From NCBI GenBank assembly GCA_964036045.1, contig OZ038378.1, positions 182,342,001-182,406,000 on the forward strand: a stretch of DNA of 64,000 nt, read 5' to 3'. Below the pieces are notes generated by a model. It made no database searches. It saw only the letters and a program-made list of their open reading frames with translations, and had not been told where the DNA came from. Shown here piece by piece: positions 46,900 to 48,786 of the stretch. The DNA comes from Eutreptiella sp. 'Long Island Sound 2002' (taxonomy: Eukaryota > Protista > Euglenida). The translations under genes were made by a program, and so were the position numbers. Position 1 is the stretch's first letter. Every line of letters starts with the position of its first letter.

Positions 46900-48786
46900 T
46901 CAAGCGGTGGTCAAATGTGCGGCACCCCTTAAGCTGTTGCTGACCCCTCCGCCATTGATATATTGCAGTGCGGCCAGCGCGGCATTCTTTTCAGCATTTT
47001 TCTTGCTGTTGCACATGTCCCCCACAAGCTTGACGGTCTGGTTCCCGTACTGCAGGACCACTGTGGACTGGAAGCAAGCCTGCTGCGAATTCTTTGACGT
47101 GCTGACCGTTTCATACAGAAGCAGCAGATTTTGAATCTTGTGTTGCAGCTCGTTCAACTGGCTCTTAGGATCTTTGTTGGGCAGCCAGGCTTTCACATGT
47201 TGGCCAGGGGGCTGTCTGTGATAATGTGTGCATTCAAGCATTGGGGCCAGCCCGGCAGATGAAGGTGCCTGTGGAACTTGGGTCAGGGTATTGCCTGCTG
47301 CTTTGACACAACTATCGGAACTCCACAAATGCCTCGTGGTGTCAGACATGGCCAGAGCCGTTGGGTTGTTGCAGACGTCCAAATACCCGTTCTGGATCAT
47401 GTCCATGACCGCTACGTACACGAACCAACGCTTCTGAACTGAGGAGCGCCTCATTCTCTCGCACTGCTTCGGGCTGATGGTATCGATCACTGTCCGCCCT
47501 GCCCACGCCGCATGGACGTGCTTGTTCGTGATCCTCACACGACCCTGGGGTGAAGGATACATGACCGAGCAAAGCACGTCAATGCGGTGCCTCCGGTCCC
47601 AGTTGTACTGGAAGAACTGATTCTCGTTGACATGTTCCTGAAGGACTGCCCGGCAATATGACAAGAAGATGCCGAAACAGTTGCCAATGTTGACTTGATG
47701 ACCGGAGTCGTGCTGGTAAGGGTAAACCATGCGGTTTTCAGGCTGAACATCGGGGGTGAAGAGGTCTTCGTCGACGTCGTCATCTGGGCCTGGATGGTCC
47801 TTTGTCTTCATGTTGGGAACGAGCTGGAGGAAGCCTTGCTTGTCTACAGTAGCAACCATATCACATTTGGAGATGTCAACCTTCACATGGCTGGGAAGTA
47901 CAAAAATTTGGCCCTCTTCATCTTCATCCAGAGCGCTTCGTGAGGCAATCTGCGTGGCCATGGTGTCCCCCAGGTCCTCATTGATCATACGCACTAGCGG
48001 AGCTGAGAAAGCTTCTTCTTGGACAAAGATGACCATTGTCAAACCACTATTCCAATCCATGGACTTCAGGTGCTCCAAAAAGTGAGATACTGTGGCGAAC
48101 GCTTCTCGTGGTGCCTTCAGCATATCATAATTGGCAGCAAGCTCACCAGCATTGTGCACGTCCTCAGTCGTGCCCGCAGGTGTGGATGAATTCCCTGGGA
48201 CGGTTTTCTCCTGCAAGCTTGTAGCAGGCTCAATGCTTGGAGGGGAACGCTTACCCATGGAAAACAGGTCGATATACAGCGGACGTTTGTTGTCCGGAAG
48301 CAAACCCCATTGCAGAGCGATCAATAGCACATTGGAATACATTTCATCTTCGAGAAAAGAGTGATCAAGCAGCAGCACATGAAACCTTTCGAGGTGGATC
48401 TGATCGGTGCTGATAGCCTTCGCCAGGGCGGTGATGGTGGCAATGACTATGTGTGGACTATCAACCTGAGGCTGCGATTGCCGTCTCCGCAATGGATGAT
48501 CCAACATCTGTTGGACTGCTGCTGTACAGCGCTGTTCCAGCTGCCGGGCATACTCCGTCACAACAATATTGTTCTCCAACACCACCAACATCTTACAATT
48601 TGGGATCTCATGCAAGGCGTTGTTGGCTGTCATGATGGTGAACACAAGCTTTTGCCAATGTGTTGCAGGTTGTGCAAGACGCTGATCTTCAGGCTGTAGA
48701 CTGAGCCCCCCACCAGGTAAGTGTGGGACTGGCCCAGGTGCTGACACAACAGTTGTAAAATTCATTGACTGGGCTTCTGCAGCCAT
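46900..48786 (-). CDS. Intronless 628-aa protein: degenerate Dicer/RIG-I-like SF2 helicase lobes, DUF283-like segment, C-terminal dsRNA-binding motif
   Basis: The dsRBM is clear: DPKSQLNEL...Y...FQSTVVL...G.MCNSKKNAEKNAALAALQYI. Helicase-like segments are KMLVVLENNIVVTEYARQL (Ia), PHIVIATITAL...IHLERFHVLLLDH (Ib/II), TMVIFVQEE (IV) and IFVLPSHVKVDISKCDMVATVD (V). VNIGNCFGIFLSYCRAV and KRWFVYVAVMDMIQNGYLD resemble the two ends of DUF283. An acceptor-like TTGTCTTGACAG(CAG) lies 30 nt upstream of the ATG, with an in-frame stop in between. Confidence 0.8.
   Translation of the reverse strand: MAAEAQSMNFTTVVSAPGPVPHLPGGGLSLQPEDQRLAQPATHWQKLVFTIMTANNALHEIPNCKMLVVLENNIVVTEYARQLEQRCTAAVQQMLDHPLRRRQSQPQVDSPHIVIATITALAKAISTDQIHLERFHVLLLDHSFLEDEMYSNVLLIALQWGLLPDNKRPLYIDLFSMGKRSPPSIEPATSLQEKTVPGNSSTPAGTTEDVHNAGELAANYDMLKAPREAFATVSHFLEHLKSMDWNSGLTMVIFVQEEAFSAPLVRMINEDLGDTMATQIASRSALDEDEEGQIFVLPSHVKVDISKCDMVATVDKQGFLQLVPNMKTKDHPGPDDDVDEDLFTPDVQPENRMVYPYQHDSGHQVNIGNCFGIFLSYCRAVLQEHVNENQFFQYNWDRRHRIDVLCSVMYPSPQGRVRITNKHVHAAWAGRTVIDTISPKQCERMRRSSVQKRWFVYVAVMDMIQNGYLDVCNNPTALAMSDTTRHLWSSDSCVKAAGNTLTQVPQAPSSAGLAPMLECTHYHRQPPGQHVKAWLPNKDPKSQLNELQHKIQNLLLLYETVSTSKNSQQACFQSTVVLQYGNQTVKLVGDMCNSKKNAEKNAALAALQYINGGGVSNSLRGAAHLTTA

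Follow-up and report, generated by a model that had tools for sequence, protein, structure and literature searches.

The helicase and the DUF283 domain are the least understood parts of the Dicer enzymes, and the ATPase activity of Dicer varies between lineages. In trypanosomatids, which belong to the Euglenozoa, dicing is carried out by TbDCL1 and TbDCL2, RNase III proteins that have no helicase. These two proteins represent the nuclease half of a Dicer and come from the same phylum as the protein described here, P0001, which is encoded in a stretch of 64,000 nucleotides from the euglenid Eutreptiella sp. 'Long Island Sound 2002' (contig OZ038378.1 of assembly GCA_964036045.1, positions 182,342,001 to 182,406,000 of the forward strand; hereafter the window). 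P0001 combines a degenerate helicase core with DUF283 and a double-stranded RNA (dsRNA)-binding domain (dsRBD). Judged from its sequence and its predicted structure it is a non-catalytic, Dicer-derived and dsRBD-bearing pseudo-enzyme, neither a Dicer, as nuclease and PAZ are missing, nor a functional helicase.

Canonical Dicers (9mw6/9mx5, Drosophila Dicer-2, mouse Dicer, Arabidopsis DCL1 and DCL4) have a base module with the same order of RecA1, RecA2 and DUF283 as P0001 and provide its best profile and fold matches in the PDB. Compared to them, P0001 lacks PAZ, platform, RNase IIIa/b, Hel2i and the pincer, its ATPase motifs are degenerate and its DUF283 carries an insertion. Partner proteins with dsRBDs dock on the helicase and DUF283 of Dicer (reviewed in PMC7384945), and the helicases of Drosophila Dicer-1 and of vertebrate Dicers have reduced ATPase activity or none (see also PMC10159624 and PMC7384945). 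Dicer-1 and vertebrate Dicer keep the helicase as a structural or partner-binding platform and not as a motor, as P0001 may do. They differ in that this platform is part of a nuclease-bearing Dicer, whose motifs are kept in vertebrates, whereas the module of P0001 stands alone and has its motifs erased. The dsRBD cofactors of Dicers (R2D2, Loquacious, TRBP/PACT, RDE-4 and plant DRB/HYL1) are non-catalytic dsRNA binders, as is predicted for P0001, and the role proposed below is analogous to theirs. Unlike P0001, they consist of dsRBDs only, with neither helicase-derived core nor DUF283, and shared descent is seen in the dsRBD alone.

A "Dicer-like" protein without RNase III, Thalassiosira pseudonana 20605, was reported in 2011. 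It has a DEAD-HelC-dsRBD organization in which Pfam found no DUF283, and it was suggested to cooperate with a PAZ-RNase III protein encoded apart from it (PMC3155517, PMC3145265). This protein belongs to a group of algal and protist helicase-DUF283-like-dsRBD proteins without RNase III, found also in Symbiodinium ("Dicer-like 2b"), Seminavis, Polykrikos and Rhabdomonas, that are collinear with P0001 and usually end at the dsRBD. They are direct sequence kin of P0001 through the DUF283-dsRBD part, and the P0001 family nests in their clade. These proteins keep GxGKT, DECH, TAS, QGxGRAR and a Hel2i of ~160 residues, all of which the euglenid family has lost. A preliminary description of the locus, drawn from the letters of the window and its open reading frames (ORFs), had regarded a split-Dicer arrangement as unfamiliar from euglenids. 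The layout without a nuclease was known already; the ATPase-dead, Hel2i-less euglenid subfamily appears to be new, and no description of such a helicase-DUF283-dsRBD family was found in the literature searched.

Knock-down by dsRNA is routine in Euglena. For Euglena and Diplonema, published work records the existence of Dicer-like and Argonaute genes and nothing further, and the literature searched yielded no description of the architecture of the euglenid RNA interference (RNAi) machinery. The P0001 family offers a concrete handle on how RNAi is organized in these organisms.

Domain organization of P0001

P0001 is encoded by a complete, intronless ORF of 628 codons (46900-48786 on the minus strand, as are all features of the protein given below), the longest of the window. 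Stops in frame are found 8 and 12 codons 5' of its ATG, and the stop codon follows directly after the dsRBD. The uninterrupted frame noticed in the preliminary description is present and intact. Pfam sees nothing in its product apart from the C-terminal dsRBD, and the assignment of the preceding regions relies on profile and structure comparisons.

The amino-terminal half of the protein is composed of two RecA-like lobes. A profile of nine family N-termini was compared by hhalign to a profile of 16 intact-motif helicases taken from the homologue matches. The first lobe (Hel1, residues 40-187; 48226-48669) aligned over residues 41-180 to helicase motifs I-III with a probability of 98.1% (P 9e-14, 137 columns), and the second one (Hel2, residues 230-330; 47797-48099) to motifs IV-V with a probability of 92.4% (P 5e-7). 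The same N-terminal profile served for an independent check on the sequences of the whole PDB, where it ranked 9mw6, an ancestral Dicer helicase-DUF283 construct, highest (E 0.008, marginal), with Arabidopsis DCL1 in second place. A plain phmmer search of the PDB with P0001 found nothing beyond one marginal match to the dsRBD. The family N-terminus was also joined to the intact-motif helicases by jackhmmer among 91 fetched proteins, a database so small and pre-selected that hhalign was relied on instead.

An AlphaFold model of P0001 built on a 50-sequence alignment has a mean predicted local distance difference test score (pLDDT) of 76.8; a model from the single sequence (pLDDT 36) was unusable and was not relied on. 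Folded blocks at residues 40-187 (pLDDT ~90 or more), 230-330, 350-490 and 540-612 are separated by disordered linkers at residues 188-229, 330-346 and 491-535. The top 12 matches of the model in a Foldseek search of the PDB are all Dicer helicases, the best being the ancestral Dicer helicase (E 3e-8), followed by Dicer-2. Mouse Dicer, DCL4 and Dicer-1 rank lower and above most generic DEAD-box helicases. VIA-align superposed the model on mouse Dicer with a Z score of 15.9 and on Hel1 of RIG-I, LGP2 and MDA5 with Z scores of 13-14.6 (~3.2 Å root mean square deviation over ~150 residues). These comparisons agree with the initial reading of the segments: on the evidence of profiles and model, a Dicer/RIG-I-type helicase is represented by its two RecA lobes, at residues 40-187 and 230-330, a resemblance beyond chance.

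The motifs that define an active helicase are strictly conserved in the intact-motif relatives, and the loss of motifs I, Ia, II, III, V and VI is common to all members of the P0001 family. The strings HWQKL (residues 43-47) and LLLDH (residues 138-142), which had been picked out by eye as degenerate Walker A and Walker B motifs, occupy precisely the columns of motif I (GxGKT) and motif II (DECH) of intact helicases. The motif I remnant (residues 42-48; 48643-48663) reads THWQKLV where the relatives have TGxGKTL, and the family pattern T-x-x-QK-L has kept the lysine and lost both glycines and the threonine of TGxGKT. In the motif II remnant (residues 138-144; 48355-48375) LLLDHSF stands for xxFDECH; the family has DHSF or similar in place of DECH, so that the aspartate is kept and the catalytic glutamate lost. 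Motif Ia (PTRxLVxQQ in the relatives) is lost, motif III changed from TAS to LFS and motif V from TxALEEGxDV to PSHVKVDIS. Motifs IV and V of the second lobe are degenerate yet recognizable. The columns of motif VI (QGxGRAR) are absent, residues 330-346 of P0001 being disordered, and the pincer that follows motif VI is gone. Hel2i, ~160 residues long in intact relatives, is reduced to a disordered linker of 42 residues (residues 188-229; 48100-48225) with pLDDT below 50, which faces a gap at template columns 167-329 and in which nonsynonymous differences are nearly as frequent as synonymous ones. The family members P0007, P0010 and P0011 apparently have no second RecA lobe at all.

From the established biochemistry of superfamily 2 helicases, these substitutions would exclude binding and hydrolysis of ATP by P0001. 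With Hel2i and the RNA-contacting motifs Ia and V lost, the core is unlikely to clamp RNA. The preliminary description had envisaged an ATPase-dead partner supplying helicase and DUF283 modules in trans to a minimal Dicer. As worded, this is unlikely for the helicase part, which P0001 cannot provide, being devoid of the P-loop glycines, the catalytic glutamate, motif VI, Hel2i and the pincer.

Residues 350-490 (47317-47739) match in phmmer comparisons the domain that directly follows Helicase_C in Dicer-like proteins, such as P0050, a protein of 1,791 residues from the green alga Cymbomonas that carries RNase III. Pfam makes no DUF283 call in this region, either in P0001 or in the intact-motif relatives; the sole PF03368 match (12.4 bits, E 0.17) is located in the C-terminal dsRBD and outside residues 350-490. 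Six PF03368 reference domains were reached through P0050, namely those of plant DCL2 and DCL3, fungal dcl2, a Paramecium Dicer-like protein, a mite Dicer and an MMETSP protein. An alignment of 34 window-type domains matched these six in hhalign with a probability of 95.3% (P 2e-8) over 104 columns, spanning nearly all of both profiles. The landmarks YC in helix 1, LP/YP in strand 2 and G-x-LD after the last helix are aligned, and the window-type domain has an insertion of ~17-25 residues between the third strand and the last helix. Its model shows an alpha-beta-beta-beta succession, short helices and then a last alpha-helix. In a PDB profile search with the post-helicase domain the best natural protein was again 9mw6, through a collinear, non-significant match to its DUF283 (E 0.24). 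Two designed repeat proteins that scored above it were disregarded as low-complexity matches. Both PDB profile matches to 9mw6 are consistent with a Dicer-type module and not decisive. The comparison of profiles, together with the modelled secondary structure, supports the identification of residues 350-490 as a DUF283 with an insertion, homologous at the profile level, in line with the DUF283-like segment suspected at the outset.

The C-terminal domain is a canonical dsRBD (residues 540-609; 46960-47169), recognized by PF00035 with E 2.3e-7 and 31.7 bits against a cut-off of 23 and modelled with pLDDT ~95. Its helix-2 motif KKNAEKNAA aligns to the dsRBD of Arabidopsis DRB2 (9k97). Between DUF283 and dsRBD lie only 45 disordered residues (491-535; 47182-47316) with pLDDT below 50, too short for either PAZ or platform; neither these domains nor any other Pfam family is matched there. 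Pfam gave no RNase III match in P0001 (PF00636, PF14622), and tblastn with the RNase III-bearing P0050 and P0014 found none in any frame of the 64 kb. A second dsRNA-binding motif or RNase III exons were found neither downstream of the ORF nor elsewhere in the window. The absence of PAZ and RNase III announced in the preliminary description is thereby confirmed, and the outcome that it gave as fatal to its reading, a failure of profile and fold searches to recover superfamily 2 helicase and DUF283 folds, did not occur.

Relatives, phylogeny and conservation of the family

A HMMER scan of 1.8 billion representative proteins with P0001 gave 89 matches, most of them confined to residues ~350-485. 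In the longer matches the counterpart of this region directly follows DEAD/ResIII and Helicase_C, and some add dsRBDs and RNase III. Four full-length relatives (P0002, P0003, P0004 and P0097) are located in the same assembly as P0001 (ERZ25074135), and two ENA-sourced ones (P0005 and P0096) are assigned to it from their source and the lengths of their contigs. The assembly has accordingly at least seven family members, P0001 included, and at least six paralogues besides it. Identity to P0001 ranges from 38% (P0003) to 48% (P0002), with 45% for P0097, which has the same layout. P0004 also stops after a single dsRBD. A search for homologues of fragment length returned P0006 alone. In euglenid transcriptomes, where the preliminary description had proposed to look for orthologues, more distant members of the family exist in Euglena gracilis (transcripts P0010, P0021, P0008 and P0011) and E. 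longa (transcript P0007).

Some paralogues depart from the common layout. The DUF283-linker-dsRBD unit of P0096 (968 residues) is tandemly duplicated and the copies are nearly identical. The contigs of P0002 and P0096 are equal in length, so that both are apparently on one contig, which suggests local duplication. P0003 and P0005 have a second C-terminal domain of dsRBD fold (~70 residues) that exceeds the Pfam cut-off for Dicer_dimer (33-35 bits) and not that for dsrm.

A maximum-likelihood tree of the helicase-to-DUF283 region was computed by a quick IQ-TREE run from 36 hand-chosen rows, fragmentary matches being omitted, with supports from the Shimodaira-Hasegawa-like approximate likelihood ratio test (SH-aLRT). 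The eight pseudo-helicase rows all group together with support 100, and the stem of their clade measures 2.33 substitutions per site. They nest inside a clade of 30 rows that is separated, also with support 100, from an outgroup of canonical Dicers from plants, animals, fungi and ciliates. This wider clade includes proteins of the diatom Seminavis, the dinoflagellates Symbiodinium and Polykrikos, Amoebophrya, Cymbomonas and the euglenid Rhabdomonas. Most of its members are without an RNase III domain and several end at the dsRBD; the exceptions that have RNase III are Cymbomonas P0050 and P0014. Rhabdomonas P0066 and P0018 stand closest to the dead clade, with a weak support of 81, and the fork is drawn open; given the long stem, the exact placement is to be taken cautiously. 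P0066 has intact helicase motifs and is made of DEAD, Helicase_C, a DUF283-like domain and RanBP-type zinc fingers, no dsRBD being detected in it. The most economical history would start from a helicase-DUF283 protein with active motifs, of which a duplicate in euglenids lost the motor and was later amplified.

Other architectures occur among the intact-motif proteins. P0014 (1059 residues), encoded on transcript-sized contigs from three sequencing runs (L004-L006), starts with RNase III and continues with an intact-motif helicase, a DUF283-like domain and a dsRBD. Two EukProt transcripts, P0101 and P0103, which are kin of the intact-motif clade, have a Z-alpha domain (PF02295) before the helicase, as might be expected of proteins that sense nucleic acid in left-handed or double-stranded form. 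The Symbiodinium protein P0055 and members of its cluster are named "Endoribonuclease Dicer-like 2b", while Pfam finds helicase and dsRBD and no RNase III in its 807 residues, and the name looks like an annotation carry-over. Caution with annotation is advisable, as Pfam sees only the dsRBD of P0001 and its nuclease-less relatives are automatically named "endoribonuclease Dicer-like".

Conservation was assessed from the proportions of nonsynonymous (pN) and synonymous (pS) differences between P0001 and three paralogues. In all four folded domains, the dead lobes included, pN is 0.19-0.35 and pS 0.55-0.85, while in the linkers pN approaches pS. The folded domains are under purifying selection, on evidence that is qualitative only because synonymous divergence (dS) is saturated.

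Expression is best documented for P0097, for which the assembly and a transcript-like contig of 2,622 nt from the Joint Genome Institute give identical coding sequences. At its 5' end this contig has TTTTTTTCG, which corresponds to the tail of the spliced leader of euglenids, and the junction falls exactly behind a polypyrimidine-AG of the genome; the genome lacks the continuation into the leader. P0097 is thus both transcribed and trans-spliced, from an intronless coding sequence that is collinear with the mRNA contig, which has 5' and 3' untranslated regions and no nuclease. P0001 has a candidate acceptor of its own, a polypyrimidine tract followed by AG ~72 nt upstream of the ATG (48859-48873), whose use for addition of the leader is plausible by analogy with that of P0097. 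An estuary metatranscriptome contains two contigs (241 and 205 nt) that show no differences from the P0001 ORF and lie inside it, none being found in the unique flanks.

Proposed role and competing explanations

We consider that P0001 acts, with a probability of about 0.5, as an ATP-independent dsRNA-binding adaptor or regulator in small-RNA pathways. Its dsRBD, perhaps aided by the dsRBD-fold DUF283, would bind dsRNA without ATP, while the conserved dead helicase core and DUF283 might retain the protein-docking role that they have in the base module of Dicer. P0001 could in this way bring dsRNA to separately encoded euglenid RNase III and Argonaute proteins, or withhold it from them, and different paralogues may handle different RNA classes. 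The family amounts to a natural experiment in which the module, freed from the nuclease and without ATPase motifs and Hel2i, is still selected and has multiplied. This argues for an ATP-independent, probably scaffolding, role.

Several points weigh against an adaptor or regulator of RNAi. The GPxH motif that is usual in the beta1-beta2 loop of a dsRBD is missing here, as read from the sequence, and P0001 has a single dsRBD when several paralogues have two domains of this fold. The link to RNAi is drawn from ancestry and not from function. The saturation of dS keeps the estimate of selection qualitative, the two metatranscriptome contigs matching P0001 have a low depth of 2-3 and might stem from DNA carried over into the library, and the searched collection held no transcript-derived protein at least 90% identical to P0001. 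A bolder extension of the adaptor role is a modular split Dicer, in which the ATPase-dead adaptors of euglenids, at least seven in this genome, would dock on stand-alone RNase III and/or Argonaute proteins, each channelling one class of dsRNA (transposon, viral or endogenous) to silencing, and the dead core would be the interface that is intramolecular in canonical Dicers. We regard this extension as speculative and unlikely.

The adaptor or regulator has its nearest competitor in a decoy or dominant-negative protein that would compete with intact-motif paralogues or Dicer for dsRNA or for a shared partner and so damp RNAi, for instance to protect endogenous dsRNA. The loss of every catalytic motif with conservation of fold and docking surfaces fits such a protein, as do the long, fast-evolving stem of the family, its many paralogues and the presence in the euglenid lineage of a wider-clade protein with intact helicase motifs. 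Purifying selection, however, suits an adaptor equally, and the two differ only in the direction of their effect; we view the decoy as rather unlikely. The protein might also bind dsRNA outside small-RNA pathways, in mRNA or rRNA processing, localization or translation control, and be Dicer-like in ancestry only. Many dsRBD proteins are known to act apart from RNAi, the nuclease is absent and the generic dsRBD is the sole module that is clearly functional by its sequence. Against this explanation stand DUF283 and the dead lobes, which are kept under selection and which known proteins have only in Dicer-type contexts, and it seems to us improbable.

Two further explanations bear on the gene itself. 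The P0001 copy, placed in a region rich in repeats, could be a duplicate that is silent or in decay, even with a family that is functional overall. No matching transcript-derived protein was found for it, it is without the second C-terminal dsRBD-fold domain of several paralogues, a 5'-truncated retroelement lies ~430 bp past its stop and high-copy repeats occupy both flanks. Set against this are the intact frame of 628 codons, pN below pS in the folded domains in the comparison with every paralogue, the similar end of P0004 after one dsRBD and the RNA-library contigs, 100% identical to the ORF and confined to it with none in the unique flanks, which makes decay quite doubtful. The other explanation, that P0001 is the first part of an ordinary Dicer joined by splicing to PAZ and RNase III exons elsewhere, had been given in the preliminary description as a second way in which its reading could fall. 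Euglenid genes may indeed hold unconventional introns that plain ORF reading misses, and the distant relative P0014 has RNase III N-terminal to its helicase. The stop right after the dsRBD, the in-frame stops upstream of the ATG, the absence of RNase III similarity across the 64 kb, the many relatives that end at the dsRBD and the intronless P0097 mRNA, complete with both untranslated regions and no nuclease, largely refute this possibility, which we rate as very improbable.

Genomic surroundings of the gene

The ORF lies in single-copy DNA amid repeats. Positions 46354-48892 form one single-copy contig in the DNA sequencing runs (depth 7, 30 and 12), flanked on both sides by high-copy repeats whose depth is in the thousands; the P0001 ORF is therefore separate from the neighbouring repeats. 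The contigs of these runs that cover the stretch are DNA-like and inform on copy number, not on transcript structure. A 5'-truncated non-LTR retroelement (long interspersed nuclear element, LINE) occupies 43750-46473 on the minus strand, the same orientation as the ORF, and starts ~430 bp past the stop of P0001. It codes for a reverse-transcriptase C-terminus and Cys/His knuckles distributed over three overlapping frames and is present in high copy, with depths in the thousands. That the P0001 ORF is cargo of this adjacent LINE was considered and rejected, because the ORF is single-copy while the LINE is high-copy and because the neighbours of the paralogues are unrelated.

On the other side, a compound trinucleotide microsatellite, (GGT)n (GAT)n (GAC)n in the minus-strand reading, is found at 48893-49004, ~110 bp upstream of the ATG, and the contigs of all DNA runs stop there. 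Beyond it, short high-copy repeats make up a mosaic at 49232-50500; they are joined in many alternative ways in the contigs of the DNA runs, and the region looks like nested small elements. A Rfam scan of positions 44000-52000 returned zero matches, and the dinoflagellate spliced leader was not found in the window. An exact match of 23 nt to the Euglena-type spliced leader, which places the genome among those of euglenids, is present within the genomic DNA at 3882-3904 on the minus strand, where none would be expected by chance.

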